A DNA stretch of 64,000 bases from Leucoraja ocellata (lineage: Eukaryota), in contig JAWMAR010000138.1 of the NCBI GenBank assembly GCA_036785375.1, positions 2,480,001 through 2,544,000 on the forward strand, in the 5' to 3' direction. Position numbers and translations under genes: made by a program. The notes beneath the pieces were generated by a model that saw only the letters and a list, made by a program, of their open reading frames with translations, did no database searches and had not been told where the DNA came from. This document shows positions 2,395 through 49,973 of the stretch, one piece after another (the first letter of the stretch is position 1; the number at the start of each line of letters is the position of its first letter).

Positions 2395-2667
2395 CTCCAT
2401 ACAGTTCGCCAAATATGACCTTACTTGAAGAATCTATCAGTTGCGAAACAATGGGATATCCTCCTGCTCAGATTCACTGGATGCTCAATGGAGAAAGAAA
2501 CCTCACCAATATATCAAGAACCGACAGAGAAAACACAACGGAAGGTCTGGTTAAAATCACCAGCAAACTTCCAATCAACCTATCCAAAGATAATCCAGAG
2601 AATAGCTATACTTGTTCTGTATGGAATGAGGCAGAGGGAAGAATTGAAGTGGATGCATCCTCATCAA
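2395..2667 (+). CDS. IgC-domain exon of a B7-family (CD276/B7-H3- or PD-L1-like) type I membrane protein; upstream leader/IgV exons not seen in the window
   Basis: Acceptor tcag|ctccat (AG 2393-2394), donor tcaa|gtaagt (GT 2668), phase 1-1. Translation APYSSPNMTLLEESISCETMGYPPAQIHW...GLVKITSKL...YTCSVWN matches B7 IgC hallmarks (APYSxP start, C-x-GYPxAxxxW, GLxxxxSxL, YxC). Five N-glycosylation sequons. Confidence 0.8.
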
Positions 2668-2714
2668 GTAAGTTCATAACCTTCATCTCTCATGATTGGG
2701 GAAAAAAGAGATCT

Positions 2715-3365
2715 TTAAATAATTGCAGATAGACAAAGCACTGGAGTGAACTCCATGGGTCAGGCAGCACCAGAGAAAAAGGATGGATCCCTTCTTCAGA
2801 CTGAAAGTAGAGGGGAGGGAACTGTAGGTAAGAAAAGGCAGGGTCGGCAACAGATAACCAAGAAAGAGTGGAGCTCACAATGGCCCATTGTTGGGTGGGG
2901 TGGAGGTGATAACGAAGAGATACAAGGATGCAGTGGAATTGGAATGATGCGTAGGGGGGAGAGAGAAGCAATGCAGGGGTTACTTGAAATAAGAGAACTT
3001 AATGTTCATACCGCTGGGTTGTAAGACGCCCAAGCGAAATATTAGGTGCAGTTCCTTCAACTGTGACAATGGACAGGACAGAAAGGTCAGTGTGGGCATG
3101 GGAAGAAGGGCAGTTAAAATGATTGGATCTGGGAGATCCCATAGGCCAAGGTAGACTGAGAATAAGTGTACAGCAGGGGACATTTCCAGAGCAGGGGTTG
3201 GCCTGGGTGGGAAAGGATGAGTGAGAGTTGAGGAAGTAACGGTCTCTGCGGAAGGCGGAAAGAGGTGGAGAAGGGCTGACGTGACTAGTGGTGGGATCCC
3301 GTTGGAGGCGACGGAAATGTCGGGCATGATGTGTTGTATGCGATGGCTGGTGGGGTGACAGGTGA
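2715..3365 (-). mobile_element. Degenerate Penelope-like fragment in a B7-like intron
   Basis: RHFRRLQRDPTTSH..PSPPLSAFRRD and ELHLIFRLGVLQPSGMNI. Confidence 0.75.
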
Positions 3366-3455
3366 AAGCTGCAACAAAATAACTGTACTAACAAATGACA
3401 CCAGTGCTCATTTGCTGAAACTTAATGTGCCTTTTATTTCCTTCTAAACTTTTAG

Positions 3456-3602
3456 TTTCAAATCTTGTCGAATTGAACCCAGAACGGCAAAGAGAAGAAA
3501 AGAAGAAAAAGGTTCTCACTGCAGTCTATGTCATTATTGGAGCTCTGCTCTCTGGGATACTTATCCTGGGTCTTTTCCTACTCAGGAAAAGATACAGTCC
3601 AG
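3456..3602 (+). CDS. Stalk + transmembrane exon of the B7-like gene
   Basis: Acceptor tttag|tttca, donor ccag|gtacaa, phase 1-1, in frame with the IgC exon. Encodes (I)SNLVELNPERQREEKKKK-VLTAVYVIIGALLSGILILGLFLL-RKRYSP: hydrophobic helix followed by a basic stop-transfer. Confidence 0.8.
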
Positions 3603-3895
3603 GTACAACTATTCAGCAAATGGTTCCATGAGAAGCCTTGTAATCTTTGTTACATGAAGTATTACCTGCGCGAATCTTTGGTATTAAATTAGCCACGGAT
3701 AACCAATTATTATAATTATAATATACACCAGTAATTAAGCGACCTATGTAATATTTTGTTCTATTGGTACAGTGCAAAGCTTTTGTTGCGTATCAACCAG
3801 TCAGCGGAAAGACAATACATGATTACAATCAAACCATCCACAGTGTACAAATGCATGATGAAGGGAATAACTCGAGTAACGTTTAATGCAAGCTA

Positions 3896-4520: not shown

Positions 4521-4833
4521 GCAACCCTCTCAACCCCATTCTCCTGCCTTCACCCCATAACCCCTGACACCCATACTAAGCAACAGTCTATCAAACAATA
4601 TTATAGGTAGGATTGTCCCAGTCTCAACATTTCCTCTATTTTGTTGAAATAAAATTATTTTGAAGGTTGAAATTACTTGAATGTTATGGATAATCTATGA
4701 TTGTTTATTTTTAATAGGCATTTTTTGGAGTTTAAGTGTAAGAAAAATGTACTGGAATATTTTACACAATTATCTTACTTCAAATGAATTAATAACAAAT
4801 TATTAATAACAAATTATTTGTTTTTAATTTTAG

Positions 4834-4868: not shown

Positions 4869-4947
4869 GTAGGTTTGATTTCAAATATTCGACTTATTTT
4901 TAACAACTTGCGTCACTATTCTTATAGTTTCTTTGTTCTTTTAACAG

Positions 4948-5592
4948 TAATGTCCGGAACAGTGCAACTGGTAAATTCAATCCACTGAGCCAGCGTTTTG
5001 CAACGCAATGTTTTATCGGTTTGCTCATCTTATTGTGCAACTGCGCAACTTCAGCATCTGCCACAGAGATTGCGAAAATCATTGTAGCCTGAAAACTAAA
5101 ATTATGCTTTCACGATCCAGTGAATGGAGCAACGAACGATGGCACTTTGCTGAGCTCCGCCACTCGTTTTGTTTGACGTCACCAACATCATACATTGATT
5201 ATTCGCACTTAGTAAAACACAACGGCACGGTGGCGCAGCGTTGGAGTTGCCGCCTTACAGCGCCGGAGACCTGGGTTCGATCATGACTATGGGTTCTATC
5301 CGCACAGTGTTTGTACATTCTCCCTGTGACTGTGTGGGGTTTCTCCAGGTTTTCCAGTTGCCTCCCACAGTCCAAAGACGTGCAGGTTGGTTGTAAAATT
5401 GTAAATTGTTTGTAGTGTGTAGGCAAGTGCTAGTGTACGAGATGATCGCTGGTCGACACAGATTCGGTAGGCCAAAATCAAAAGAAAGACTGGATACAAA
5501 AGAGGCCAATCAGTTTCCCTAAGGAATAACACTGCTTTACACATAGAATGCTTAATAAATCAATGAGCCAGCCACCATAAATGTATAATAAA
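4948..5592 (+). other. Probable terminal exon of the B7-like gene: stop codon TAA (4948-4950) plus 3' UTR
   Basis: Acceptor ttctttgttcttttaacag|TAA after a 79-nt intron. AATAAA at 5554-5559 and 5587-5592. Confidence 0.45.
5222..5478 (+). mobile_element. HE1-type tRNA-derived V-SINE (representative); other copies at about 6890-7175, 9620-9905, 24895-25195 (+) and 15645-15890, 16190-16455, 23360-23650, 37970-38270, 51725-52030, 57915-58190, 58525-58780, 59045-59870 (-)
   Basis: A/B-box head ggcacggtggcgcagc...gggttcgatc, V-domain ttctccctgtgac.gcgtgggttt..tccgg..ttcctcccaca, CR1-like tail. Confidence 0.85.
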
Positions 5593-14696: not shown

Positions 14697-15070
14697 GAAA
14701 CATAGAAACATAGAAACATAGAAATTAGGTGCAGGAGTAGACCATTCGGCCCTTCGAGCCTGCACCGCCATTCAATATGATCATGGCTGATCATCTAACT
14801 CAGTACCCCGTACCTGCCTTCTCTCCATACCCTCTGATCCCCTTAGCCACAAGGGCCACATCTAACTCCCTCTTAAATATAGCCAATGAACTGGCCTCGA
14901 CTACCCTCTGTGGCAGAGAGTTCCAGAGATTCACCACTCTCTGTGTGAAAAAAGTTCTTCTCATCTCGGTTTTAAAGGATTTCCCCCTTATCCTTAAGCT
15001 GTGACCCCTTGTCCTGGACTTCCCCAACGTCGGGAGCAATCTTCCTGCATCTAGCCTGTCCAACCCCTTA
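14697..15070 (-). mobile_element. Young CR1/HER1 3' fragment
   Basis: ORF 14800-15075 (-); (CATAGAAA)n tail. Confidence 0.9.
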
Positions 15071-15149
15071 AACAATCACAAAGTAACCCTATCACATTTG
15101 TAGGCAAGAATGCATTCATTCTTTTATTTCCGTTTAATTTAGTGTTAGA

Positions 15150-15640
15150 ACGGTTCACCAGACTGATTCCTGGGATGTCAGGACTGTCTTATGAAGAAAG
15201 ACTGGATAGACTTGGTTTATACTCTCTAGAATTTAGAAGATTGAGAGGGGATCTTATAGAAACTTACAAAATTCTTAAGGGGTTGGACAGGCTAGATGCA
15301 GGAAGATTGTTCCCGATGTTAGGGAAGTCCAGGACAAGAGGTCACAGCTTAAGGATAAAGGGGAAATCCTTTAAAACCGAGATGAGAAGAACTTTTTTCA
15401 CACAGAGAGTGGTGAATCTCTGGAATTCTCTGCCACAGAGGGTAGTTGAGCCCAGTTCATTGGCTATATTTAAGAGGGAGTTAGATGTGGCCCTTGTGGC
15501 TAAGGGGATCAGGGGGTATGGAGAGAAGTCAGGTACGGGATACTGAGTTGGATGATCAGCCATGATCATATTGAATGGCGGTGCAGGCTCGAAGGGCCGA
15601 ATGGCCTACTCCTGCACCTAATTTCTATGTTTCTATGTTT
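15150..15640 (+). mobile_element. Young CR1/HER1 3' fragment
   Basis: ORF 15142-15546; (TTTCTATG)n tail. Confidence 0.9.
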
Positions 15641-16455: not shown

Positions 16456-17005
16456 CATAGAAACATAGAAACATAGAAATTAGGTGCAGGAGTAGGCCAT
16501 TCGGCCCTTCGAGCCTGCACCGCCATTCAATATAATCATGGCTGATCATCCAACTCAGTATCCCGTACCTGCCTTCTCTCCATACCCCCTGATCCCTTTA
16601 GCCACAAGGGCCACATCTAACTCCCTCTTAAATATAGCCAATGAACTGGCCTCGACTACCCTCTGCGGCAGAGAGTTCCAGAGATTCACCACTCTCTGTG
16701 TGAAAAAAGTTCTTCTCATCTCGGTTTTAAAGGATTTCCCCCTTATCCTTAAACTGTGACCCCTTGTCCTGAACTTCCCCAACATCGGGAGCAATCTTCC
16801 TGCATCTAGCCTGTCCAACCCCTTAAGAATTTTGTAAGTTTCTATAAGATCCCCTCTCAATCTCCTAAATTCTAGCGAGTATAAACCAAGTCTATCCAGT
16901 CTTTCTTCATAAGACAGTCCTGACATCCCAGGAATCAGTCTGGTGAACCTTCTCTGCACTCCCTCTATGGCAATAATGTCCTTCCTCAGATTTGGAGACC
17001 AATAT
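16456..17005 (-). mobile_element. Young CR1/HER1 3' fragment nested in a V-SINE
   Basis: ORF 16555-17055 (-). Confidence 0.9.
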
Positions 17006-18722
17006 TGGCAATATTGGAGGCAATATGGAGGCAATATTACTGCAGACTGCACCACTGTGCGTTTACTTTCAAATTTGTAATTGAAACCTCAGCAGAGTGA
17101 CTTTCGAACAGTATTTGATGAGGCAACTGCCCTATAAGATGCACCACTCTGCTGTTTTATTAATCGTTCATCATCATTCTTGCTAATCAAATGTTCCTCT
17201 ACAGTGCTACTCCAGTGGCTGCAGTAAGTGAGTCGAAAGCCCGTGGTTTTCTGTGTGGGACGATCCTGAACTTCACGGAACCTTCAAGCCCAAGGTACAG
17301 ACTGCATCAGCCCAGCCAATGAGTAGGAATTTCTTTAACGAAAAGGTGGTGAATCTGAGGAATTCATTGCCACAGACGCTGTGTATTTTTAAACGGAGAT
17401 TGAGAGTAAGGATGTCAAAGGTGACGGGGAGAAGGCAAGAAAATGGGGTTGAGTGGAAAAATATAAATCAGCCATGATCGAATGGTGGAACAGACTCGAT
17501 GGGCTGAATGGTCTCATGATCGTAGGATTATGATCTTATGAGGTGGCTGACTGACTGATGGGCTATAACAAGGATGCAGGACTGATAGGTATGAGAAGGC
17601 ACACCAAGAAAGACCATTGGACGTGCCTCAATGCCTCAACAATCCTTGGTGGTTAGAAGTTGCCATTCCTTTTGCCCACAGCAGTCCCCTCACTTTAGGT
17701 CTTGGTGCTAGCATGCACAGTAGTGCAAGAGGCAGGGAGAGCCGCAGAGGTCAGGATCATAAACATGCTTAACGTGAATGGGTGTGGAATAATTCGGCAT
17801 CAAAATCCATTAAGCTGGGAAGAGTGCAGAGAAGATTTACTAGGATCTTATCAGGACTCCAGGGCCTGAGCTATAGGGGGAGATTGGGCAAGCTACGACT
17901 TTATTTATTGGACTGCAGGAGTCTGCGGGATGATCTGATAACTATGTGTATAAAATCAGGAGGGGAATAGAAGGGCGAATGCGCAGAGACTTTCACCTGA
18001 CCCAACCTATAGGTTTAAGGTGAGGGGGGGAAGATTTAATAGAAACCTGAGGGGAAATATTTTCACACAGAGGGTGAAATAAATCAATCAAATGACTATT
18101 ACTGTTGCTGAGGCAGCTGCACATCATGAGCAGTGGACAGAAATCAGTTGCCATCTGACCTTGCAAACTAACGCAGTATCACAGATCATCAACAGATGGC
18201 GGTAGATACTCTGAAGTAGATATTCAGAGGACGTTACTTCACTAGGTGTAACTATTGTTTTTACCATTGTTGAGAAAAAAGACCAAGTTCTGGAAGAACT
18301 CAGCAGGTCAGGCATCATCTTTGGAGGGGTTGGACAGGCAACGTTTCAAGTTGGAGCCTCTCTTCAAACCTAAAGCATCCTCCGTCCATTTCCTCCAAAG
18401 ATGCTCCTGGTCAGAGGAACCAAAATGTTACCGATTCCTTTTCTCCGCAGATATTGCCTGACCCAGCTGAGTTTTAGTTTAGATTAGTTTAGAGATATAG
18501 CATCAAAACAGGCCCTTTGTCCAACTGAATCTGCGCCAACAATCACTGGTACTATCCTACACACTGGGGACATTTTGCAATTTTTACTGAAGCCAATTAA
18601 CCTCCAAACTTGCACGAGTTTGGAGTGAGGGAAGAAACCGGAACACCTGGGGAGTTCTTCCAGCACTTTAGCTTTTGTTCAGGATTCCAGCATCTGCAGT
18701 TCCTTATATTTCCAATTGTTTG

Positions 18723-31939: not shown

Positions 31940-32425
31940 TGACTGATTCCTTGGATGTCAGGACTGTCTTATGAAGATAGATTGGATAGACTTGGTTTAT
32001 ACTCTCTAGAATTTAGGAGATTGAGAGGGGATCTTATAGAAACTTACAAAATTCTTAAGGGGTTGGACAGGCTAGATGCAGGAAGATTGTTCCCGATGTT
32101 AGGGAAGTCCAGGACAAGGGGTCACAGCTTAAGGATAAGGGGAAAATCCTTTAAAACCGAGATGAGAAGAACTTTTTTCACACAGAGAGTGGTGAATCTC
32201 TGGAACTCTCTGCCACAGAGGGTAGTTGAGGCCAGTTCATTGGCTATATTTAAGAGGGAGTTAGATGTGGCCCTTGTGGCTAAGGGGATCAGGGGGTATG
32301 GAGAGAAGGCAGGTGCGGGATACTGAGTTGGATGATCAGCCATGATCATATTGAATGGAGGTGCAGGCTCGAAGGGCCGAATGGCCTACTCCTGCACCTA
32401 ATTTCTATGTTTCTATGTTTCTATG
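31940..32425 (+). mobile_element. Young CR1/HER1 3' fragment
   Basis: ORF 31955-32326; (TTTCTATG)n tail. Confidence 0.9.
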
Positions 32426-34093: not shown

Positions 34094-34151
34094 ATGGCTG
34101 TGCAAATATTCCTCTGCTTTTCGTTTTTATTCTTTCCAATGTTAACTGCAG
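34094..34151 (+). CDS. CD7: CD7-like receptor exon 1 (signal peptide MAVQIFLCFSFLFFPMLTA-G)
   Basis: Good Kozak context aatATGG, 19-aa hydrophobic leader, donor GCAG|gtaaga, phase 1 compatible with the IgV exon. Confidence 0.75.
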
Positions 34152-34714
34152 GTAAGAACCAACTTCCAATGAAGTCTCATGAATTTTAAATAATAACTGC
34201 ACACCAGAAATGTTTTGCCGCACTTGTTTGTTCCTCTACAGGCTTGTGGTCAGAAGTGATCGTATATGTTCAATCTTCCTTTGGGATAGCCTTTGACAAA
34301 TATTGTCCCTGCACTGTAGAAACAAGGAATTGCAGGTGTTAGTTTGCAACAAGAATGACACAGAGGGCTGGAGTAACTCAGCGGGTCAGGCATCAACCCT
34401 GGAGAACATGGATAGGCGATGGTTCGTGTCGGGACCATTCTTCTGTCCCGACCTGAAACATCACCTATCCATGTTCTTCATTGCCAAGGAACTAATCCCT
34501 TCATCTGCGATTCTTCTTAAATCCCAGAGTTTAGGATAGATTTTCCAAATCTAGGTTCTGTGGTCTAATGTTTAATTTTCTCATTCTTGTGGTACATTTT
34601 GGGATGTGTTTCTATATTGGTAAGAAATTATAAAAATGCATGCTATCCTTTTCTTGTGCTATCTTGAACCGTGATCTTCATTAGAGCATTTCAACTTGTT
34701 CTCTCCAGTGTAAA

Positions 34715-35320
34715 TAGAGTTATAGAGTTATAGAACCATAGAGTCTTACAGCATGGAAACAGGCCCTTCCGTCCAACTTGCCCACGCCGGCCAACATCCC
34801 GTCTACACTTGTCCCACCTGCCTGCAGGTAGCCCACATCCCTTTAAACCTGTCCTATCCATGTACCTGTCTATATAATTCTTAAGCATTGTGATAGTGCC
34901 TGCCTCAACTATCTCCTCTGGCAACTCGTTCCATACGCCGACCACCTTTTGTGTGAAAAGGTAACCCATCAGGTTCTTATTAAATCTTTCCCCCCTCACC
35001 TTAAACCTATGTCCTCTGGTTCTCAATTCCCTTACTCTGTACAAGAGATTCTATGCTTTTGCCTCTCATGTACAGCTCTATAAATAAGAACATCCCTCAT
35101 CGTCCTGCAGTCCAAGAAATAGAGTCCGAGCCTGCCCAGCCTCTCCCTTAAGCTCAAGCCCTCGAGTGCTGACAAGGTTATAAATCTTCTCTGCACCCTT
35201 TCCAGTTTGATAACATCTATCCTATAACTTGGTGCCCAAAACTGAACACAATACTCTAAATGTGGCTTCACCAATGTCTTACACAATTGCAGCTTGATCT
35301 CCCAACTTCTATACTTAAAT
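34715..35320 (-). mobile_element. Older CR1 3' fragment
   Basis: KTLVKPHLEYCVQFWAP, RTRGHRFKVRGERF, FTQKVVGVWNELP. Confidence 0.8.
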
Positions 35321-36187
35321 ATTAATATAATCCCAATACAAACCAATCAACATTGAAGCAGTTGATGTTCTTCTGTCTGAAGAAGGGTCTTGACCCAAAA
35401 CGATGCCTATTCCTTCACCATAGATACTGAGTTGAGCAGTCGAGGACTCTATTTCTTGGACTGTAGGATGATGAGCATTCTCCAGTATTTTTTGTCTATC
35501 TTTGATTGTTCCGGCATCTACAGTTCCGTCTTAAACATGAAAGCAATGATACCTAACTATGTTTTACAATCCTTGGTCGTTAAAGCTGCAAATAATTGAA
35601 CTAATTTAAAAGGTTTTAAACAAAAGATAAATTCTGCAATACCGATAAGGAATCTATCATGAAAAATCAAGCTAATCTTTATAGAATTAGTTTTTATATA
35701 TTTGTGACCTTCAAAATGATGTTGGGTTTGAAAGTGTTGTATTAAAATTCATTACATACAAAAAATGAACGCTGTAAACCAAAATCTCATTGGAACATCC
35801 AAAAATATATATTTTAAACTTTCATAGTGAGGAATAGACTTTGGAGTCGCCTCTCTTTGAAAAGCAAATGATATATTGCATTTGCTGGGAAATAAATTGC
35901 TGGGATATTCCACAAGACAGGTCGTATATGTAAAGAGAAAACAAATTAAAGTTTCAGATCAAGAATTATTCTATTTCCTAGCTCCTCTTTTTAGGAATAT
36001 TACCTTATCATCTATAACAATTGAAATGTAGGCACAAAAGAAAGAAGGGCCTATTTCCGTTCTGTAATCCGTATATGTTTATATATGTTTATATCAAAGA
36101 TTAAGAAATAAATGAGCAGAAACAGTGGTGGAGGAACTCAGCGGGTTAGGCAGCATCTCCAGAGGGAATGAACAGACAACATTTCAA

Positions 36188-36562
36188 GACATAGAAACAT
36201 AGAAACATAGAAAATAGGTGCAGGAGTAGGCCATTCGGCCCTTCGAGCCTGCACTGCCATTTGATATGATCATGGCTGATCATCCAACTCAGTATCCCAT
36301 CCCTGCCTTCTTTCCATACCCCCTGATCCCTTGAGCCACAAGGGCCACATCTAACTCCCTCTTAAATATAGCCAATGAACTGGCCTCAATTACCTTCTGT
36401 GGCAGAGAATTCCACAGATTCACCACTCTCTGTGTAAAAAATGATTTCCTCATCTCAGTCCTAAAAGTCTTCCCTCTTATCTTTAAACTGTGACCCCTAG
36501 TTCTGGACTTCCCCAACATCGGGAATAATCTTCCTGCATCTAGCCTGTCCAACCCCTTAAGA
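36188..36562 (-). mobile_element. Young CR1/HER1 3' fragment (CD7-like intron 1); further copies at about 38895-39145, 49120-49385 and 62214-62513
   Basis: ORF 36289-36606 (-); shared tail. Confidence 0.85.
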
Positions 36563-39144
36563 CCCTTCCTCCGACTGAGTGAAACAAACGTTCTTTTGCC
36601 CCTCAAACCCGTACTGTTTCAACAAATCTTATTCGACATTTCTTTAATTTTAAATATTTAGGTTTAAGAAACTGTCTCAAAATTAGGTTATTTTATTCTT
36701 GAACATTTTAATTGCATGTTTTAATTCTTAGATTCTAAGCATCTTAATATGTTTCAATTACATTTAAATATTTGTAAAGTAAAAGTTGGAGTTCTTATGG
36801 ATTTGCAATAATCATTGTAAATGATTGCAGTTACCACAACCCAGGTTTGGCAATGTCAAAGGCTAGAGGCCATTGCTTTAAAGTAAGAGGGGCAACATTT
36901 AAACAAGACAGGATTTTTACACAGAGAGTGGTGGCTGCCTGGGGCAGTGGTGGAGGTAGATATGATAGTGGCATTTAAGAGGCTTATTGATAGGCGCATG
37001 GATAGGCAGGGAATGGAGGGATATAGATTATGTGCAAGCAGCGGAGATTAGTTTAACTTAGTGTCATGTTCGGCAGGGACATGACGCCCAGTGGAGGATT
37101 GCGGACGCAGCTCAGACTATCACACAAACCAACCTCCCTTCCATTGACTCCATCTACACCTCACGCTGCCTCGACAAAGGCCAGCAGCACAATCAAGGGC
37201 AAGACGCACCCCGGCCACTCCTTCCTCTCCCCTCCCCCATTGGGCAAGAGGTACAGAAATGTGAAAACGCACACCTCCAGACTCAGGGACTCTTTCTTGG
37301 ATTCTTGGTTTCATAGTTCTCCAAAATATTCCAAATGGAATTTAAACTGGAGGTGGTTTCTTCCCAGCTACCATCAGGCATCTGAACCATTCTACCAACA
37401 ACTAGAGAGCAGGCCTGAGCTACTATCTACCTCATTGGAGACCCTCAGAATATCTTTGATCCAACTTTATTGGATGTTATCCTGCTTTAAACGTTATTGA
37501 CGTTTTGCCTTTATCTTGTATCTATACGCTACAGAGCGCTTGACTGTAAGCATGTATTCTCTTTCCGTTGACTTGTTAGCACGCAACAAAACATTGGTAC
37601 ACTTGATAATAAACTAAACTAAAAAAACGAATCCATTGATTGTGAAGTCAATTCTGTTCATTGCATATCATTTTACTGTGTAACATGTATGGAGACATGC
37701 ACACCTTAATGTTGAGTATGCATGGTGCTTTGTCCAGCATGATCTCCTGTATTCCTCAATGGACCAGAGTGGATCTTATTGCTTAGAAGTAACAATATCT
37801 TGAGGGATAGGCCAGGCTTTGAGGCCAGGCTTTGGCAGCAATGTCAATGTGAAGCAAAATGTGCACACAATGTTTTGGGGATATGATGAAATTTCATCAG
37901 GTGACCACAGGAAAAACGTTGGTGAAAACTTGAAGTCATTAAACAGCTATCACCTGCTAGACTCATGAGACTTGAGAGAAACAGTGCGGAAACAGACCCT
38001 TCAGCCCATGGATTCCGCACTGACCTGCGATCTTCTCATACATTAACATTTTCCTACACACTAGGGACAATTTACAATTTACAGAAGGCAACTAACCTAC
38101 AAACCTGTGAGTCTTTTGAGTGTGGGAAGACACCGGATCACTCAGAGAAAACCCATGCAGTCACAAGGCAAATATACAAACTGTATACAGACAGCACCCG
38201 TGGTCAGGATCAAACCCAGGTCTCTGGTCTGTAAGGCAGCAGCTGTACAATTGTACCATCATGCCATCCGCCTCCTTTGATAAAAACAGAAAATGCCCAA
38301 AATACTCAGCAGGTTGGGCAGCATCTGTGGGAGGAGAAACAGAGTGAGCATTTCAGATTGGGACCCCTTCCTTAGAGCTGGTCTTCCTTCTTCTTCCTAA
38401 TCCTAATGAAAGGTCTTCAACCTGAAACGTTAATTTTGCTTCTCTTCCCACGGATGTCGCCTGACCTGCTGAGTAGCTCCAGCATTTTCTGTTTATATTT
38501 CAAGTTTCCCTCACCTGCAATATTTTGTTTGTTTTTGTAGCCTCCTTTGATTTGAAGACCAAAAAAGTAGATACATACCACGAGCAGGAGGACTGCAGAA
38601 TGAAATTATATTCTGGACATTACTGCAGTCAATGATAAGTCAATAGATTTTTTACTGCAACTTTTGCTGCAGAACCAAAGATCAGACCGCAACTTTGCAA
38701 AATAATCTGCAGCCAGTGAATAAAAGAAAAGGGAGAGATTAGATCATAGAACAGAGAACACAGAACATAGAACAGTGTTGTATAGTATAGGAACAGTTCA
38801 TTTGGCCCACAATGTCTGTGCCGAATATTATGCCAGCCAAACTCTTATCTGCCTGCACATGTTCCTTATCCCTCCTTCTTTTCTTAGGCCCCCTTGACAC
38901 AGAGAGTGGTGAATCTCTGTAACTCTCTGCCACAGAGGGTAGTTGAGGCCAGTTCATTGGCTATATTTAAGAGGGAGTTAGATGTGGCCCTTGTGGTTAA
39001 GGGGATCAGAGGGTATGGAGAGAAGGCAGGTACGGGATACTGAGTTGGATGATCAGCCATGATCATATTGAGTGGCGGTGTTGGCTCGAAGGGCCGAATG
39101 GCCTACTCCTGCACCTAATTTCTATGTTTCTATGTTTCTATGTT

Positions 39145-39535
39145 TGACCATTGCTGACCATGGGTGTCTGCAGGGTGTTATTCCCTATATGGAGGATGCC
39201 TGTGTGTGATTTTATTTAACGTGGGGAAACAGCCACCCTACGGTCCTTGACAGATCTGGATCAGGATCCAGTGGCATGGAATCCAAGATGACTGGAGACC
39301 CTTTTCTGCTGCAGCCTTCATCCGCCTTCCCAGCCGTTGTGAAGCTCCACAAAGGTCAGCCATCATCCTCCGCTTGTTCTACCGTTGAGGTCTTGGTTGG
39401 ATTGCTCTTTGTCAGAGACCTCCCCCTTGACCTTAGCGTATTGGGTGGCCCTACCGTGACCATAGCTCCAGGCGGCATCACTCTCAGGTTCTCAGGTCAC
39501 ATGCTTCTCCACCACGACAAGGGGACAATCCACGG
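39145..39535 (-). mobile_element. RTE (Rex3/Expander/BovB-like) 5'-UTR-derived non-autonomous element
   Basis: Minus strand starts ccttgtcgtggtggag...gagctatg...gtagggccaccca, typical of RTE-clade 5' ends. Confidence 0.55.
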
Positions 39536-39794
39536 AGAATCGCTCCATTCCCTGCATGTCTATGTGCCTATCCAAAAGCCTCTTAAACACCATCATCTTA
39601 TCTGCATCCACCACCACCCCTGGCAGTGTGTTCCAAGCATCCACATGTGTTGAAAGCTTGCTCCCCACATCTCCTATAAACTCACCCCCTCTCATCTGAA
39701 AGCAATGTCCTATAGTATTGGATATTTCCATCCTGGGAAAAAGGTTCTGACTGTCTTCCCCAAGTATTCCTCTCATAATTTTATATACTCTTAT

Positions 39795-40412
39795 CAGATC
39801 TTTCCTGGTCCGAGAACACTAATGCAATCATCAAGAAAGCTCATCAGCGCCTCTACTTCCTGAGAAGATTACGGAGAGTCGGTTTGTCAAGGAAGACTCT
39901 CTCTAACTTCTACAGGTGCACAGTAGAGAGCATGCTGACCGGTTGCATCGTGGCTTGGTTCAGCAACTTGAGCGCCCTGGAGAGGAAAAGAGTACAAAAA
40001 GCAGTAAACACTGCCCAGTCCATCATCGGCTCTGACCTTCCTTCCATCGAGGAGATTTATCGCAGTCGCTGCCTCAAAAAAGCTGGCAGTATCATCAAAG
40101 ACCCACACCATCCTGGCCACACACTCATCTCCCTGCTACCTTCAGGTAGAAGGTACAGGAGCCTGAAGACTGCAACGACCAGGTTCAGGAATAGCTACTT
40201 CCCCACAGCCATCAGGCTATTAAACCTGGCTTGGACAAAACTCTGAACATTAATAACCCATTATTTGTTATTTGCACTTTATCAGTTTATTAATTCATGT
40301 GTTTTGGAGTCAATGCCTGTTATGTTCTGTTGTGCTGAAGCAAAGCAAGAAATTCATTGTCCTATCAGGGACACACGACAATAAACTCTCCTGAACTCTT
40401 GAACTTGAACTT
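39795..40412 (+). mobile_element. Rex1/Babar 3' fragment (same subfamily as 10590-12432)
   Basis: ORF 39884-40246 nearly identical to 11880-12240; (CTTGAA)n tail. Confidence 0.85.
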
Positions 40413-40998
40413 GAGGTCTTCCCTTAGCCTCCAGCATTATGGAGAAAACATTTCTAGTTTGTCCAACCTCTCTTTGTATCTAATACTCTCTATTCCACGC
40501 ATCATCCTGACCTGTTTCTCCCAGTTGTTTTCAGGCAATTGTATCATCCTATCACCAACTAGAGTGCGATTCTGAGCTACTATCAACGTCACCGGTGACC
40601 CTTAGACTAAAGTGGACTTTACTGGACTTTATCTCACACTAAATGTTATTTATTTCATCATATATCTGTACACTGTGGACAGCTTGATTGTAATCATGTA
40701 TAGTCCTTCCAGTGACCTGATAACATGCACCAAAAAAGCTTTTCAATGTGTCTCAGTACATGTGACAATAAACTAAACTAAACTAAACTAGATTTGGGCC
40801 TCGATTGAGTCACTCCAGCATTTTGTGTCTATCAATTCTTGATTGTTGCATGAAACAAACTTCCTCCAGGGATATATCGCTAATTGTATGATATTCGTAC
40901 CTTCTCCATCTCTGTTTTTAAAGTATGAAAATGTGCTTATTGCTGACTGATCACTTGATGCATGCACTGACAATATTTTTGTTTGTGCAATTTTACAG

Positions 40999-41343
40999 GA
41001 CAGTTTGTTTCCCAGTCTCCACGTACCATATATGCAGAAAGAGGAGAATCAGTTTCAATGACCTGTGAAATCACATTTACACATGGAAAGCTAGTGGGCA
41101 CTAATTTACTAAGGAATCCTTTGAACCCAATGGATCTTTGTTATGTCACCGGGACAACTGACTACGTACCTGATACGCATAGTCTTCGTTTGCGTTGCAA
41201 TGGGACACACGATGGAAAAAGGATCAACATTACTCTCAAAAATCTCCAGAAAAACGACACTGATATTTACTATTGTTCTTCTGGGATAGAGAACGGTAGA
41301 TTAGACAACTTCAACTCTGCAGGAACAATACTTTTTGTAACAG
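40999..41343 (+). CDS. CD7: CD7-like receptor exon 2 (IgV domain, CD7/CD28-family type)
   Basis: Acceptor ttttacag|ga, donor acag|gtacgt, phase 1-1. GQFVSQSPRTIYAERGESVSMTC...KLVGTNLLRN...DLCYV...RCNG...INITLKNLQKNDTDIYYC...SAGTILFVT. V-set with no C-strand Trp (as in CD7 GIYLRQ and in CD28) and a J-like G strand. Confidence 0.8.
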
Positions 41344-41464
41344 GTACGTGAGTTTTATGCATCAAATATTCATGCAGTATTATATACTGAAGTAGAGCTG
41401 ATAATTAAAAACTATGTGTGGGAAGCCACTGCAGATGCGGGTTAACATTGAACTATCATAACAT

Positions 41465-42508
41465 ATCTATCTATCTATATACTGTTAAAACTGTGTGTGT
41501 GTGTGTGTGGGTGTGTGGGTGTGTGTCATTTTGCCTTTGAAACGTATCTCCTCGAAAACCAGATGCAAAAATAGGGAGATTTTTACATATTTTGCTAGGG
41601 AATTACCTTATGATTTCAGAAAATGTGGTCAATTATTTCCCCAGATTTTGAATAAAATTGTTCACAAAACTCACTTTAAAAAAAAATAATTGCCGCTTGC
41701 TAGCTGCTGACATCGCGATGCCCACATGCCCACCAATCAAAGCCCACCTGCCTCCTGGCCCCGCCCGCCCACCACTGTGGATTAACGTAGCCGCTGTCAA
41801 TGCGCATGCGCAGTTTTTCACGAGGTATGTTACTCCACGCACCCCCCCCCCCCCCCCTCATTCTTCAAAAGGCGCAGAAGGAATGAGAAAGTTCTGCAGC
41901 AAAGATCCTACAGCTCCGCTCCGCAATAGGATATTTGTTTTGGCAGATCGCAAAGTCAGCAGCACTCACATGCTGAAGAAGGTTCTCTTCCCAGAGAAAG
42001 CAGAGAGAAGAGGGAGGAGGAGAGGGAGGAGAGGGAGGAGAGGAGGGGAGAGGGAGGGGGGGGAGGGGACCCTCCCTCTCTGCCCCCCCCCCTCCCTCTT
42101 TACCCCCCCTCCCTCTCTGCCCTCCGTTTCCTCTCTGCCCTCCCTTCCTCTCTGCCCCCCTCCCTCTCTAGGGAGTGGTGAATGTTGGGACCTATGGGTG
42201 AGTGGTGGAGTATTGCGTTTGGGAACCAGCCCTCCCCTGTGATGCCGTGCCCTCCCAGCCCCAAATCCATACCCCTTCCCCTTCCCTCCACCACCCCCCC
42301 TCTCTAGACACGACTGCGCAGTTAGGGGTTATGCATGAGTGGATAGGGCGGGGCATGGGGTATAAGGAGCAAATTAATATTAATATAATATCAACATGTG
42401 TGTGTGTGTTTGTGTGTGTGAAATGGGGGAAACGAGGAGTTATATTAGAATGTGGGTGAAGTGTGTATTGGTTTATTTGTGTGGTGGTTGGTGTGTGTGT
42501 GTGTGTGT

Positions 42509-42562
<54 letters not shown>

Positions 42563-43915
42563 GTATGTCATTTTGCCTGTGAAACATATCTCCTCGAAAC
42601 CAGACGCCGAAACAGAGACATTTTTACATATTTCAGTAGAGATTTTGGGCAGTAGAGAATCTGTCATTTGGTACATTATTTTCCCGGCTTTTTTATTAAA
42701 ATTGGTGACCAACCTGACCTTTTCATTTAATCTGACCACTGCCCAGTTGCTGACGTTACAATAACAGTGAAATGTTTACACCTTCTGGTAGAAATTTCCC
42801 TCATGATTTCAAAAATCCAATCCTCTATAAATGTGGTCAATTACTTTCCGAGATACCTCTCTCCCCCCTCCGTCTCTCCCTCTCTGTCACTCTCCCCCCT
42901 CTCTCTCCTCCATCTCTCTCTTCCCATCTATCTCTCTCCCTCCCCNNNNNNNNNNNNNNNNNNNNNNNNNNNNNNNNNNNNNNNNNNNNNNNNNNNNNNN
43001 NNNNNNNNNNNNNNNNNNNNNNNNNNNNNNNNNNNNNNNNNNNNNNNNNNNNNNNNNNNNNNNNNNNNNNNNNNNNNNNNNCTCTCTCCCTCTCCCCCTC
43101 TCTCTTTCCCCTCTCTCTCTCTTCCCCCTATCTCTCCCCCACCTCTNNNNNNNNNNNNNNNNNNNNNNNNNNNNNNNNNNNNNNNNNNNNNNNNNNNNNN
43201 NNNNNNNNNNNNNNNNNNNNNNNNNNNNNNNNNNNNNNNNNNNNNNNNNNNNNNNNNNNNNNNNNNNNNNNNNNNNNNNNNNNNNNNNNNNNNNNNNNNN
43301 NNNNNNNNNNNNNNNNNCTGCCCTCCACACCCTCCCCTCCACCCCTCCCCTACCCCCTTCCTCCCACCTCTTCCCCATCCATTACCCACCATCTCTCCCC
43401 CTCCCTTCCTCCCCCTCCCTTCCCCCACCTCTCCCCCTTCCTTCCCCCTCTCCCCTTCCCTTCTCCCCTCTCAGCCCCCCTCTCTCTCCCCCCTGTCTCT
43501 CTCTCCTCTCTCTCCTCCCAACCGCTGCCCAGCTGCTGACGTCACAATGCCCTTGCTCGAGGCCCCCCTGTCTCCTGGCCCGTCCTGCTTCTGGATTAAA
43601 GCAGATGTTGTCACCGTGCATGCGCACTGCTTTCACGAGTTACGTTACCCCCCCCCCATTCTTCAAAAGGCGCAGAAAAATCGAGTGTTCTGCAGATCCG
43701 AGGTCACCGGAGGTCACCGGCGCTCAACGCTCAGCTGAAGAACTTTCTCCTCGCGGCCTGCCCCAGGTTTCCCTATAGTCGAGCCTGTCTCTTTCTCTCT
43801 CTCCCCAGTGCAGTGAGTAAAGTCTTCCCGCCTCAAAAGCCACGATCGGCCGGCCCTTTGCTGCCATCGATCGTCCGCCCGCTCCAGCTTTGTTTCCAAT
43901 CATTTATAAAACACT
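41465..43915 (+). repeat. Dimeric, microsatellite-rich non-autonomous element (possibly Helitron-like) spanning two assembly gaps
   Basis: Blocks at 41527-41880 recur at 42567-42840 and 43520-43680 (tgtcattttgcct.tgaaac.tatctcctcgaaa; gcatgcgca...cattcttcaaaaggcgcagaa). TCTATAT start, (GT)n and polypyrimidine tracts. Confidence 0.5.
42946..43317. other. Assembly gaps (N runs 42946-43081 and 43147-43317) within a polypyrimidine tract
   Basis: N bases in the sequence. Confidence 0.99.
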
Positions 43916-45286
43916 AATCATAGAGTCTTCCAGCATAGAAACAGCCCCCTTGGCCCAACTTGCTCGCACCGGTCAACATGTGCCATCTGCACTAGTCCCA
44001 CCTTGCCTGCTTTTGCCCCATATCCATCTAAACCTGTGTTATGCAATTACCTGTTTTAATATTTCTTAACAGGTATCCAAAATATCAATTCCATTGTTTC
44101 TAATTATCTCTTCCCAGGGGAATAAATTAACGGCTTGTTACTCAACATATTTGATTTCACTTTTCTGACTGAAAAATGAAGTTGTGGCAATTGCATTTTA
44201 AGTGCCGTTTTATACTGAATTCATAATAAAATCCCTTCCAGAATGTAGTAAGAGACAGCAGAGTAGAGGCAAAACGAATTGGAGATGCTGGAATCTTGAG
44301 TAAAATACAAAGTTCTGGAGTAACACTAGTCAGGCAGCATCTCTGGAAAGAATGGATTGGCGACATTTTGGGTTGGGACTGTTCTTCAGCCTATCCTTTG
44401 ATTCCACAGATGCTGCCTGACCCACTACTCCAGAATTTTGTGCTTTATTCAGAGGTCAGCAGAAGTCGTGTTGCCTTTGCGCGGCATATTGCTTGAAGAG
44501 TGTATAAATGCTGGAGTAACTCAGCAGGACAGGCAGCATCTCCGGAGAAGAGGTTACTATAATCAAAGTAGACATGCCAAAGGAAAAACTGTATTATATA
44601 GTCCCCTCTTTATTCAAGTGAGATTGGATAAACCCAGCAACTTGGGTGCCAGTGGGATAATTTCTTATTATTGTGGTCTGTTCTATTCGATCATATGACC
44701 AACACCTTTGGTTAGTTTAGAGATACAGGATGTTTTGAGTCCACGTCACCCATCAATTGTCTTTTCAAACTAGATCTATGTTATACCACATTCTCAATCA
44801 CTCCTTACACATTTGGGAGATTTAGAGGCTAATGAACCTACAAAGTTGCACGTCCTTGGAGTGTGGGAAGGAACATGTGTCCATTCTCCATGTCAGAATG
44901 GCAAGTGAAAAGATTCTTGGTTCAACACCCATTTCCGAGAGACTTAAGCAGATAGATTGTGCCTAAGTCTTTAATAATGTATTTCTGGGAGGTCCGTTGG
45001 ATAAGGTGTTAAAATGCCGTTCCATCTGCCCACTCAGCAGGACATAAATTTCCCAGACCACTATTTGACCGATATATACCCCCAAACTAAAATTCAATAC
45101 ATTACGATGAAGTTTCCAGGACTTGATATTTACAAGACCTGGCAACATCCTCGTAAATCTTTTCTGGACACTTTCCAGCTTAACGACGTTGTTCCTATAA
45201 CAGGGTGACCAAAACTGAACACAGTACTCTAACTGTGGCCTCACCAATGTCTTGGACAGCTGTAACATATCCTCCCAACTTATATA

Positions 45287-45479
45287 TTCGATGGTACACA
45301 AAAAAGCTGGAGAAACTCAGCGGGTGCAGCAGCATCTATGGAGCGAAGGAAATAGGCAACGTTTCGGCCCGAAACGTTGCCTATTTCCTTCGCTCCACAG
45401 ATGCTGCTGCACCCGCTGAATTTCTCCAGCTTTTTTGTGTACCTTCGATTCTCCAGCATCTGCAGTTCCTTCTTAAACA
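45287..45479. repeat. Palindromic Penelope-pLTR-derived mini-element (about 160-bp hairpin) inserted in a CR1 remnant; related copies at about 6165-6390, 32680-32870, 33505-33665, 45655-45850, 50130-50335 and others
   Basis: ggtacacaaaaaagctggagaaactcagcggg...gtttcgg-c-ccgaaac...cccgctgaatttctccagcttttttgtgtacc; ttatata on both flanks. Confidence 0.8.
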
Positions 45480-46872
45480 TTTATATACTCGATGCTCTGA
45501 CTGATGAAGGCTAATGTGCTGAAAGCCTTCTTGATAACCTTGTGATGCCACTTTCAAGGAACATTGTACCTGTAATCCCAGATCCCTCTGCTCCACAACA
45601 CGCCAAAGGGCCTTGCCATTCACTGTTGGTTCTGCCCTGGTTTGAATTCCAAAGATAGACATAATTGCTGGAGTAACTCAGCGGGACAGGCAGCATCTCT
45701 GGATTGAAGGAAAGGGCGACGTTTCGGGTCTAGACCCTTCTTCAGATAGTCTCCCAAGGGTCTCGACCCAAAATGTCACCCATTCCTTCCAACCAGGGAT
45801 GCTGCCTGTCCTGCTGAGTTACTCCAGCATTTTGTGTCTATCTTCAGTATTCGCAGTTCCTTCCTACACACTTGAGTTCCAGAGATGCTGTCTGAGTTCT
45901 TCCAGCATTTTGTGTTTGTTGAAGATTGCAGCATCTGCAGTTCCGCCTGCTTCCATACTTACACTTGTTAGATTCTCATGCTTTGAAATGTGATCCATTT
46001 TGTGTGAACTTTGAAAACTACCTGTGGTGCTTGGAAACCGCCACTGCATCGAACTGCCTCTATATTGTGGGATGAAACTTCTGAGGGGTTATGCCTTATT
46101 CCTTATGCCTTATCCTAATGCCTTATAAACCAATCTGCTGGATCTGTAAACAGTTTTGTTTTTCCTCCCTAAACGCTTGTAAACTTGAGCTTATATACCT
46201 TTTTTCAAAAAATATTTGTGATTTAGTTATCAAAATCCTTGCTAATTTTCAATGTGCAATTTAGTAGCTCAAGCATGCTGACCTCATGTTTAAAGGTCTT
46301 TGTTCAAGATCCTTAGAATTACTTCTTTGAAGAGTTCATGCGTTCATGTTATAGGAGCAGAGTTAGGCCATTCAGCCCATCAAGTCTACTCTGCCATTCA
46401 ATCATGGCTGATCTATCTTTCTCTCTCAACCCCATTCTCCAGCCTTCCCCCAAAAACCCCTGACACCCGCACTAATCAAGAACCTGCCAATCTCCACCTT
46501 AAAAAGATCCATTGACTTGACCCACCACAGTCATCTGTGGCAAAAAATGCACAGATTCACCGCCCTCTGACTAAATAAATTCCTCCTCATCTCCTTTCTA
46601 AATGTACGCCCTCTTATTCTTAACGGCTGTGTCCTCTGCTCCCACACCTTCATACTAGTGGAAACATCATCTTCATGCCCACTCTATCCAGTTCATGAGA
46701 TAAACACTGACGGTTAATGTAGCGAATGGTATTTTGCCACCAGACACAAATATTCCATCCTATAAGTCATGTTTCATCTTTTTTAAGGAGTTTGTGAACA
46801 TTTTATGAGAAGTTGATGATGTAATGGACAAATTAAGACATACGTATATGTTTTTATATTTTATCTTCTCAG

Positions 46873-47003
46873 ACGAAACCAAGCATAACTGTGCCACAGA
46901 AGAAAAGTGCACATTTGCTGTTTTTAAGGATCCGCTGATGATTGCAATGATTATTCTTGCCGTTGCTAGCTTCCTTTGTGCACTGGTTCTGTTAATTCGA
47001 CAT
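46873..47003 (+). CDS. CD7: CD7-like receptor exon 3 (Cys-containing stalk + TM)
   Basis: Acceptor ttctcag|ac, donor cat|gtaagt, phase 1-0. Encodes DETKHNCATEEKCTFAVFKD-PLMIAMIILAVASFLCALVLLI-RH. Confidence 0.78.
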
Positions 47004-47112
47004 GTAAGTTTCTAATTTATATTCATCGAATATTATGCCTTGAAATATAAAAAACATAACAAGATTATTAAACTGATTGAAGAAATTGATTTGAGGGCAG
47101 CACTGTGGCGCA

Positions 47113-47660
47113 AGGCAAGGCAACTTTATATATATATAGCACATTTCATACACGAGGCAGACTCAAAGTGCTTCACATAAAAACAGGTCATACAATAAAA
47201 TGAAATAATAAAATGAAATAAAATAGAAGAATTAAAAGAAAAGAAAAGCAAAATTAAAAATGCATTATAAAAAGTGCAAAAGTTATAAGTGCAATGGAGT
47301 TAAGATTTAGCTGAAAGCTAAAGTAAACATAAAAGTTTTCAGTCTTGTTTTAAAAGTGGTCAAAGTTGGGGCAAGTCTTAAATCTTCAGGAAGTTTATTC
47401 CAGCTATTTGTTGCATAGTAACTAAATCCTGCTTTCCCGTGTTTTGTATTTACTCTGGGAATCACCAACAGATTGGTTTCATAAGATCTTAGCGGTATAG
47501 AAGGCTTATATAGTGGAAGCATGTCAGTGATATACTTTGGTCCTAAACCATGTAGTGATTTATAGGTGAGCAGCAGGATTTTGAAATCAATTTTCTGACA
47601 TACAGGGAGCTAATGTAAGGATTTAAGATTTGGTGTAATGTGTTCAAATTTTTTTTGAAC
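47113..47660 (-). mobile_element. L2-clade LINE 3' fragment inserted in a SINE head
   Basis: YKPSIPLRS...LLVIPRVNTKHGKAGFSYYATNSWNKLPEDLRLAPTLTTFKTRLKTFMF; (CCTTG)n tail; tggcgca duplicated at 47106-47112 and 47683-47689. Confidence 0.8.
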
Positions 47661-49871
47661 ACATTACACAAACCCGGGTCTCTGGCGCAGCAGATAGAGC
47701 CACTGCCTCACAGCGCCAGAGACCCAGGTTCGATCCTGTCTCTGTCAGCATGTGATCCATATCCCTGCATGTCTATATGCCCATCTAAATGCCTCTTAAA
47801 TGTCGCTATGGGTGTACATGGGAGTGGGCAAGAGATGGTTGGTGCTCTGAGGCGCAACAGACTGCAGATGCTGGAATCTGATGGATGGAAAGGAGAACAG
47901 CTGGAGGAACTCAGCCGGTCAGGCAGCATCTGTGGAAGGAAATAGGCAGCCCGGGTGAAGTGTCCTGACTCGAAACACCGACCAGCAATTGATGCATTTG
48001 ATGGTTTTAGATATAAAGGGAGGATGGGCAAACTTGGACTGTTTATTTCTGGAACTTTGGGTGTTGAGGTGAGAACTGCTGGGAGTACATAAAATTATGA
48101 GAGGCATAGATAGACAGTCTGACAGTCAGAACCTTTATTCCCAGGGTGGAAATGTCAAAGACGAGTGGGTACAGTTTAAAGGCGAGGGTGGCAAAGCTTA
48201 AAGGAGATGTGCGAGGCACATGTTTTACAGAGTGGGGTGAGTGCTTGGAATGTGTTGTCAAGCGTGATGTCGGAGGCAGATATGATAGTGGCCTTTAAGA
48301 GCCTTTAACATAGGAATGTGGATAGGCAGGGAGTGGAGGAATATGGATCACTGATCAATTGTAATCATGTGTAGTCTTTACCCTGGCTGGCTAGCACGTG
48401 GCAAAAAGCTTTTCACTGGACCTCGGTACATGTGACAATTAACAAAACTAAACTGAACTAAATTAAATGTGCTGGCAGAGGAAATTAGTTGAACTTGGCA
48501 TCAAATTTGGCATGGACATTGTGGGGTGAATATTCCTGTGCTGCACTGTTCTGCGTTCTTCCCTTCCAAGTTACAATCCACCCTGATTTGGGGAATTAGT
48601 GTTATTCCAGCTTCATTGCTAGCTGTAAACCTTGGACCCTCTCTGCCCAACAACACCATGGGATTACTTATGGAATGCATTTCGTTGTCTCTGTACTGTA
48701 CACTGACAATGACAATAAATTGAATCATTTCATTTCAATTTTTTTTATATAGATTCTCTAACTCAGGAAGCAGACCCACTACGATCAGCCATGATCACAA
48801 TGAATGGCGGTGCTGGCTCGAAGGGCCAAATGGCCTCCTCCTGCACCTATTCTCTATGTTTCTATGACTTGTTAGGGGTATTAACAGCATGTATGTCCAC
48901 TATTCACCTTTCCAAAATTAATTAGGGGAATTGATAGGATAAATGCACAGTTTTTATACCCTGAGGAACCGGGGGGTTTAAGGCGAGGGGACAAGATGTA
49001 AAGGAACGTGAGGGACAACTTTTTCACTCAGTGGGTGTATGGAATGAGATGCCAGAGGGGGTAGTTGAGGCAGATTTAATAACAGCATTATAAAGCACTT
49101 GGACAGGTACAAGGAAATGAGGAGAACATTTTTCACACAGAGAGTGGTGAATCTCTGGAACTCTCTGCCACAGAAGGTAGTTGAGGCCACACAGTTCATT
49201 GGCTGTATTTAAGAGGGAGTTAGATGTGGCCCTTGTGGCCAAGGGGATCAGAGGGTATGGAGAGAAGGCAGGTACGAGATACTGAGTTGATGATCAGCCA
49301 TGATCATATTGAATGGCGGTGCAGGCTCGAAGGGCCGAATGGCCTACTCCTGCACCTAATTTCTATGTTTCTATGTTTCTATGAAAGGAAAGGTTTAATG
49401 GGATATGGCCAAATGTGGGCAAATGGGACTCGCTTACATGGGACACTTGGTGTTAGCATGGATGAGTTGGGCTGAAAGGCCTGTTTCCATGCTGTATGCC
49501 TCGATGACTGTAAAGACATTTGCTAGAATTCTGAAGGCTCTCAGGCTGAAGAAGGATCTCAACCCAAAACATCACCTGTTCTTTTTCTCCAGAGTTGCTG
49601 CGTGACCGTTGAGTTCCTCCAGCTTCGGTTTAAACCAGCATCTGCAGTTCCGTCCTTCTTTGATAGAATTCTCTCTTGTAACTTTGCAAGAAGCGAGATA
49701 TGAATAGACAATCTGGCAGAAGATGGCCTATCATTGCGCAAATAATGCCAACCAATATTGATTCCAACGACCATTATGCTTAATTAGGATTAACAAGAGT
49801 GCAAGAAAGTCTGTGTTGAAAGTTGTAAATTTAGAGAAAAAATAACGTTTAAAAATTGTCTTAATTTTTAG

Positions 49872-49973
49872 GGGAAAAATCACTATCAAGAGGCCGAATC
49901 TCAACGAAAACGAGTTCCAAATTCAGTGTATGAAGATATGAACTTGGTACGATCGCAAAGTATGGCTCGTTAG
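49872..49973 (+). CDS. CD7: CD7-like receptor exon 4 (cytoplasmic tail with YEDM, stop)
   Basis: Acceptor ttttag|ggg, phase 0. Encodes GKNHYQEAESQRKRVPNSVYEDMNLVRSQSMAR*. VYEDM is the CD7 tail YxxM motif. The four exons total 636 nt, i.e. 211 aa plus stop. Confidence 0.78.
   Translation, partial: GKNHYQEAESQRKRVPNSVYEDMNLVRSQSMAR

Follow-up and report, generated by a model that had tools for sequence, protein, structure and literature searches.

How old is the partnership between CD7 and its ligand, and from what kind of gene did that ligand arise? CD7 is a major marker of T and natural killer (NK) cells and a target of chimeric antigen receptor T (CAR-T) cells; how far back it reaches in evolution, and where its ligand came from, has been little described. 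SECTM1, a neighbour of CD7, has been called eutherian-specific and of unknown ancestry (PMC4603632), and in mammals the gene for a proven CD7 ligand adjoins CD7 (PMC4603632, PMC3769348). The question is raised by a stretch of 64,000 nucleotides from the skate Leucoraja ocellata (GenBank assembly GCA_036785375.1, contig JAWMAR010000138.1, positions 2,480,001 to 2,544,000 of the forward strand; hereafter the window), which carries on its plus strand the 3' half of a B7-like gene, its 5' part cut off at the window start, and, 28.5 kb downstream, a complete four-exon gene (34094-49973) for a receptor with a single immunoglobulin variable (IgV) domain. From sequence comparisons we assign the receptor to CD7 and the upstream gene, at family level, to B7, and we give an even chance to the reading that the two encode a cognate pair in cis, a forerunner of mammalian SECTM1-CD7 in which the ligand has a variable domain, a constant domain and a transmembrane segment (V-C-TM). 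In our literature search neither SECTM1 of cartilaginous fish nor elasmobranch CD7 turned up as the subject of a paper; a survey of the CD28 family leaves CD7 aside (PMC11599192), and both genes may already be listed under other names in the supplements of PMC11599192 and PMC12151841.

Used alone as a query, the IgV exon of the receptor found P0001, a Logan transcript (84% identity), and Amblyraja radiata LOC116987783 (P0002, 78%). With these relatives and a contig assembled from sequencing run X1, the receptor gene was laid out as follows:

34094-34151, plus strand: CD7 exon 1, start codon and leader (MAVQIFLCFSFLFFPMLTA), ending in the phase-1 donor GCAG/GTAAGA; tblastn with P0001 and P0002.
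40999-41343, plus strand: CD7 exon 2, IgV domain; Pfam V-set, 1.5e-10.
46873-47003, plus strand: CD7 exon 3, short two-cysteine stalk and transmembrane (TM) segment; tblastn and the run X1 contig.
49872-49973, plus strand: CD7 exon 4, tail GKNHYQEAESQRKRVPNSVYEDMNLVRSQSMAR and stop; tblastn and the run X1 contig.

The exon phases fit, and the lengths (58 + 345 + 131 + 102 = 636 nt) give 211 codons plus a stop, matching the 211 residues of the transcript-derived P0001. The tail holds YEDM at 49929-49940, within VYEDM at 49926-49940, so that a single-IgV receptor with this motif, which the first-pass annotation had placed on the same strand from 34.1 kb, is borne out. The exons were compared one by one and not as a joined model; full-length comparisons used orthologues.

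A profile built from six elasmobranch rows and compared with 5.8 billion proteins (1536 candidates) gave 19 matches at E ≤ 1, of which 15 form the elasmobranch family itself (14 named species and one Logan transcript). The remaining four all come from amniotes, and three of these carry a CD7 or CD7-like name: Cyrtonyx CD7 (2.7e-26), Chelonoidis CD7 (8.8e-23; 31% identity, 99% coverage), Serinus CD7-like (1e-22) and an unnamed Chelonoidis fragment (4.2e-17). The elasmobranch members carry the automatic names 'T-cell antigen CD7-like', 'uncharacterized', 'Ig kappa chain V region' and 'CMRF35-like'. When an elasmobranch-only profile was compared with the PDB, a 'T-cell antigen CD7' chain (12hp_C) was matched in one full-domain stretch (1.2e-15, 60.6 bits) and was the best chain under 259 residues; the 13 chains ranked above it all have at least 259 residues and are read as multi-V-domain constructs. 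Turtle CD7 itself placed 12hp_C first (2.2e-10, the next chain at 8e-5), and turtle CD7 P0173 is 35.7% identical to the skate IgV over about 111 residues (60.8 bits) and 47% identical to its tail. From skate to catshark the tail motif PNSVYEDMNL.R.QS hardly varies (YEDM stands in 14 of the 15 full-length rows), and its NSVYEDM segment is found again in turtle CD7. By its sequence the receptor is thus a CD7 orthologue and not a member of the CD28 family.

The likeness to amniote CD7 extends to the overall plan (one IgV domain, a TM segment and a short tail, from four exons, the V exon being flanked by phase-1 junctions), the NSVYEDM tail and the framework motifs LQKNDT..Y.C and GESV..(S/T)C, at 31-36% identity with turtle CD7. 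Human CD7 likewise has four exons, with a long proline-rich stalk. The elasmobranch proteins differ from amniote CD7 in a short, cysteine-bearing stalk and, in batoids, an extra pair of V-domain cysteines; birds differ in having two V domains.

Within the CD7 family we also observed the following. The extra batoid cysteines (..DLCY.. and ..RL(E/R)C..) are present in 7/7 aligned batoid proteins and in the window exon (41136-41200). The bird CD7 proteins P0172 and P0174 (321-325 residues) contain two tandem IgV domains, both of which resemble the skate V exon. Second CD7-like copies lie on the same chromosome-sized contigs in S. canicula (P0171) and Rhinoraja (P0176), and the catshark copy P0171 ends without a YEDM tail. 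The PDB holds the 120-residue 'T-cell antigen CD7' chain as 12 chains in two entries, 12hp and 12np.

The visible part of the upstream gene comprises three coding exons and a putative transcript end:

2395-2667, plus strand: immunoglobulin constant (IgC) exon, phase 1 at both ends; acceptor ..TGTCAG/CT, donor ..TCATCAA/GTAAGT.
3456..3602, plus strand: stalk/TM exon; acceptor TTTTAG/TT at 3455/3456; 3' end provisional, the donor probably being CAG/GTACAA at 3602/3603.
4948-4988, plus strand: last coding exon, ..MSGTVQLVNSIH, with its stop at 4986-4988; from sequence and reading frames.
5554 and 5587 (element 5554..5592), plus strand: two AATAAA signals found by pattern search, likely the 3' end of the B7-like transcript.

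These features agree with an earlier call of a B7-type gene with IgC and TM exons ending at about 5.6 kb. The IgC exon matches the Pfam families C2-set_2 ('CD80-like', 6.8e-9) and C1-set (8.7e-7), and the stalk/TM exon reads ..ERQREEKKKKVLTAVYVIIGALLSGILILGLFLLRKRY.. in translation. When the 90-residue IgC exon was compared by phmmer with 1.84 billion representative proteins, 145 matches were obtained at E ≤ 0.001, mostly giant multi-Ig proteins matching in several stretches; the best two-domain match of about 290 residues was Rhinoraja longicauda LOC144594480 (P0004; 75% identity, 9.4e-34), and further two-domain matches came from Hypanus, Mustelus, Chiloscyllium, Carcharodon, Scyliorhinus torazame and Heterodontus. 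The full-length orthologues (P0004, P0007, P0011, P0017, P0018, P0021) are V-C-TM proteins of 285-300 residues. By tblastn, the IgC exon is 69% identical to residues 126-223 of P0004 and the stalk/TM exon 74% identical to residues 228-269, and the last exon resembles the P0004 C-terminus, ..ISGRVSLVNSIQ. In Rhinoraja the tail extends some 14 residues further, which makes our tail model incomplete; an additional small tail exon may lie between 3603 and 4947. Residues 1-125 of the 298-residue P0004 found no match in the window, positions 1-2394 included, and the IgV exon is accordingly placed upstream of the window.

A profile of the full-length orthologues ranked the solved structures in the PDB in the order CD276 (B7-H3; a two-Ig chain; 3.9e-20, 75 bits), PD-L1 (2.8e-19, 72 bits), PD-L2 (6.3e-18, 68 bits), BTN1A1 (6.5e-14, 55 bits), CD80 (6.1e-13, 52 bits), ICOSL (41 bits) and CD200 (37 bits), and aligned across both domains with CD276, PD-L1 and PD-L2. 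The IgC exon alone was ambiguous against the same database (IgG Fc 32-41 bits, CD276 31 bits). With B7-H3, PD-L1 and PD-L2 the lineage has in common the V-C-TM architecture at about 290-300 residues, and its IgC domain carries the B7-like motif GYPxAQIxW besides the Pfam 'CD80-like C2-set' match. On this evidence the upstream gene belongs to the B7 family, the level at which its sequence assigns it. More general searches returned general families: the ESM Atlas, queried with the catshark orthologue P0021, gave only generic V-C families (butyrophilin, CD200, CD80, PD-L) and, when restricted to unnamed clusters, mollusc and echinoderm proteins, while nine V domains of the lineage matched only general Ig families in Pfam at E ≤ 10.

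A butyrophilin identity was considered for the upstream gene and rejected. The protein has no cytoplasmic B30.2/SPRY domain (its short tail ends at the stop at 4986-4988, and the orthologues of 285-300 residues have no SPRY match), and BTN1A1 scores below B7-H3, PD-L1 and PD-L2 in the PDB comparison; the earlier description of the gene as B7-like holds on this point.

The C-termini of the lineage vary. Among the proteins compared (P0011, P0017, P0150, P0021 and P0007 with P0004 and window positions 4948-4988), the C-terminus is TDV or ADI in the four shark proteins and TQV in that of the stingray Hypanus, endings with the look of PDZ ligands; the two skate sequences, Rhinoraja and the window, differ from these and end in NSIQ and NSIH.

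Linkage in other sharks and rays had been named beforehand as a test of the pairing. Both proteins could be located in five other elasmobranch species, and in every one the two are recorded on a chromosome-sized contig of the same length: Rhinoraja (82,215,972), Hypanus (65,566,259), Chiloscyllium plagiosum (56,061,091), Heterodontus (77,794,652) and Scyliorhinus torazame (170,482,615). The accessions of the B7-like and CD7-like proteins are consecutive in Heterodontus (XP_067914191/-192) and C. punctatum (GCC35555/GCC35554), 4 apart in S. torazame (GCB61899/GCB61903) and 10 apart in C. plagiosum (XP_043570550/-560). A CD7 orthologue thus always lies on the chromosome of a B7-type gene and is adjacent to it here, which turns the origin of SECTM1 into a testable question. 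SECTM1 lies upstream of CD7 on the same strand.

Between the two skate genes no other convincing gene is apparent, as the first-pass annotation had also concluded. We compared 128 stop-to-stop open reading frames (ORFs) of at least 75 residues, from 6.9-34.0 kb and 50.3-64 kb, with Pfam at E ≤ 0.001; three matched RVT_1, two matched ALKBH8_N, and there was no other match and none to SPRY, in a scan that exons shorter than 75 residues would escape. The ALKBH8_N matches are read as ORFs from the tails of long interspersed nuclear elements (LINEs).

The second line of evidence comes from the V domain of the ligand, whose features were determined on the orthologues, the V exon of the window gene lying outside the window. 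In 10/10 proteins of the lineage (eight elasmobranch, two coelacanth) this domain has two cysteines 16 residues apart near its N-terminus and no F-strand cysteine, and in 10/10 a motif GxYx[Y/W]x[L/V] follows 58-62 residues after the second cysteine; the full set of these features was found in 0/6 other B7-like proteins examined. Eutherian SECTM1 is described as having C38 and C55 invariant, lacking a classical disulfide and carrying an invariant G113xYxWxLxGxQ123 (PMC4603632). The two groups are alike in an N-terminal cysteine pair (16 apart in the orthologues, 17 in SECTM1) with no canonical disulfide, and in GxYx[W/Y]xL, which follows the second cysteine at a similar spacing; the coelacanth motif, GTYEWFL, lies 58 residues past that cysteine, the same distance as in SECTM1. 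SECTM1 (K12) is also a type I membrane protein whose gene adjoins CD7. The cysteine pair and the motif give the link to SECTM1 the standing of a lead. That SECTM1 has its direct orthologue in the elasmobranch and coelacanth V-C-TM lineage, with its atypical IgV, we hold only tentatively, as a possibility somewhat short of even.

The coelacanth members were also examined for their arrangement. Latimeria has three B7-like genes (P0093, P0106 and P0010) on one 37.8-Mb contig, and the accessions of two of these genes are consecutive; two of the encoded V domains are atypical and one is canonical, and one protein has two IgC domains.

Cognate pairing and SECTM1 ancestry are each plausible from the sequences compared here, and the pairing would work as follows. 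A B7-like ligand on a presenting or epithelial cell would bind the CD7 IgV domain on a T or NK cell, with the atypical V domain of the ligand as the predicted contact to the V domain of CD7. The tyrosine of the conserved NSVYEDM tail would then be phosphorylated, and the phosphorylated YEDM would recruit the p85 SH2 domain of PI3-kinase, leading to co-stimulation; CD7 is reported, in the title of Lee et al. 1996, to bind PI3K via a YEDM motif. The two stalk cysteines may give a disulfide-linked receptor dimer. Were the orthology with SECTM1 correct, SECTM1 would be no eutherian invention but a B7-family gene minus its IgC domain, and CD7 with its ligand would be a further B7:receptor co-stimulatory axis, held in cis since the jawed-vertebrate ancestor: a fourth old axis of B7 type beside CD28/CTLA4-B7, ICOS-ICOSL and PD-1-PD-L.

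Several observations weigh against a cognate SECTM1-CD7 forerunner. The accession distance is about 800 in Rhinoraja and about 400 in Hypanus, so that these two species contribute same-chromosome linkage only, and elsewhere adjacency is inferred from neighbouring accessions, which usually follow gene order. None of CSNK1D, SLC16A3 and UTS2R was found by ORF scan in the 64-kb window. The automatic names of the B7-like orthologues conflict (PD-L2 or PD-L2-like, CD276 or CD276-like, ICOS ligand, uncharacterized). On the side of SECTM1, the comparison was made with a published description of its motif and not by alignment, which is why the link stays a lead, and the xGxQ end of that motif is unmatched in the lineage. 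The lineage has an IgC domain (exon 2395-2667), whereas SECTM1 has a single Ig-like domain. No SECTM1 chain appeared among the best 60 of 352 PDB matches of the V-domain profile or among the 21 PDB matches (E ≤ 10) of a coelacanth V domain, in a database that may hold none. On the side of the receptor, VYEDM is replaced by VHEDM in Amblyraja P0002, the model of which ends after NLV; a genuine loss, an allelic variant and a faulty model are all conceivable.

One alternative is that the genes are neighbours without being cognate, left over from an old cluster of the immunoglobulin superfamily and with other partners or none. Linkage on one chromosome can persist without function, and binding between the two proteins is a prediction. 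The coelacanth relatives moreover sit in a B7-like cluster (XP_005998594 to -596, consecutive, on the 37.8-Mb contig), which indicates that the lineage duplicates locally. We nevertheless regard this alternative as doubtful: the genes are close neighbours in the skate window, accession order suggests the same in four sharks from three orders, in mammals a proven ligand gene occupies the corresponding position beside CD7 (PMC4603632, PMC3769348), and the V domain has rare derived features in common with SECTM1.

A second alternative, which we consider improbable, takes the upstream gene for the elasmobranch orthologue of PD-L1 or PD-L2, a PD-1 ligand beside CD7 by accident. NCBI names the Carcharodon protein 'programmed cell death 1 ligand 2' and those of Hypanus and Chiloscyllium 'PD-L2-like', and, as given above, PD-L1 (a solved full-length chain) is matched by the family profile at 2.8e-19. 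PD-L1 is stated to occur in cartilaginous fish, with the sequences named in supplements (PMC12151841), and the present lineage may be what is listed there as PD-L1, which would also count against a SECTM1 ancestor. Some orthologues go by the name CD276 or ICOS ligand, however, so that the names disagree with one another. In a small tree of 15 proteins, drawn with a midpoint root for display only and built without CD80/86, true ICOSL, B7-H4 and HHLA2, the elasmobranch B7-like clade (100/99) stands apart from the PD-L clade (100/98; paddlefish and two frogs), on the side of the coelacanth cluster and a paddlefish 'CD276'. PD-L1 is not among the best 60 of the 352 PDB matches of the V-domain profile, which include B7-H4, butyrophilins, CD200 and CD80. 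The canonical B-F disulfide of the IgV domain, kept in the four PD-L-named rows examined, is missing in the lineage, a difference that sets it apart from B7-H3 as well as from PD-L1 and PD-L2.

Remaining is the receptor, which had earlier been described as 'CD7/CD28-like'; the CD7 half of that label stands on the amniote matches, and the CD28 half falls away. A CD28-family identity (CD28X or CD28H, for instance) is very improbable: the family (CD28, CTLA4, ICOS, CD28H, CD28X) resembles the skate receptor in its single V domain, stalk cysteine and YxxM for PI3K, with YEDM reported for CD28X (EYEDM) and mentioned for CD28H (PMC11599192), batoids have a second V cysteine pair, and the single skate IgV exon found CD28 chains (1.2e-6, 1e-5) and no CD7 among its best 60 PDB matches, a result that speaks against the CD7 assignment, but the nine CD28-family members are defined by proline motifs (MYPPPY, PPP or EIP; PMC11599192), none of which occurs in the complementarity-determining region 3 (CDR3) of the receptor, SSGIENGRLDNFNSAG (FG region YYCSSGIENGRLDNFNSAGT), no CD28-family protein is among the 19 profile matches, and no CD28, CTLA-4, ICOS or PD-1 chain is among the best 60 PDB matches (the last at 1e-12) of the elasmobranch-only profile, in which CD7 reached 1.2e-15. 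The catsharks lack the first cysteine of the second pair, so a 'CD28-type second disulfide' is no trait of the family. CD28X and CD28H were accordingly rejected as identities for lack of a proline motif.

Two assembly gaps interrupt the receptor gene:

42946-43081 and 43147-43317, no strand: runs of N with 65 read bases between them.

Both fall inside intron 2, between the end of exon 2 at 41343 and the start of exon 3 at 46873, and so leave the coding sequence unaffected. Microsatellite and low-complexity DNA rich in CA and TC flanks them at 41900-43750 and is the likely reason for the breaks. Contigs from sequencing runs were compared with the window over 44000-49990, as a record of presence and not of expression level. 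In run X1 (14 million letters, 2016; the RNA type is a guess), a contig of 797 nt matches 49872-49990 and then directly 46870-47003, giving the junction of exons 3 and 4; its remaining 491 nt are unlike the intron upstream of 46870, so that the match stops at the exon border. Of the words sampled from the IgV exon, 62% occur in the same run. These data fit a spliced mRNA across the gap-bearing intron, in which the junction of exons 2 and 3 is itself inferred. Contigs from runs X3 and X4 cross exon-intron borders and are therefore read as genomic. The transcript P0001 has a tail exon identical to that of the window and an IgV exon only 84% identical; it may stem from a closely related species or represent a paralogue or a highly divergent allele.

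The window as a whole is rich in LINE and short interspersed nuclear element (SINE) fragments. One LINE-type 3' ORF (..RLGLYSLEFRRLRGDLIETYKILKGLDRLD..) recurs in many copies on both strands, for example at 15055-15543, 16558-17088, 23823-24380 and 31943-32323, and is taken to represent the ORFs labelled ALKBH8_N. A reverse-transcriptase fragment lies on the minus strand at about 19.3-20.4 kb.

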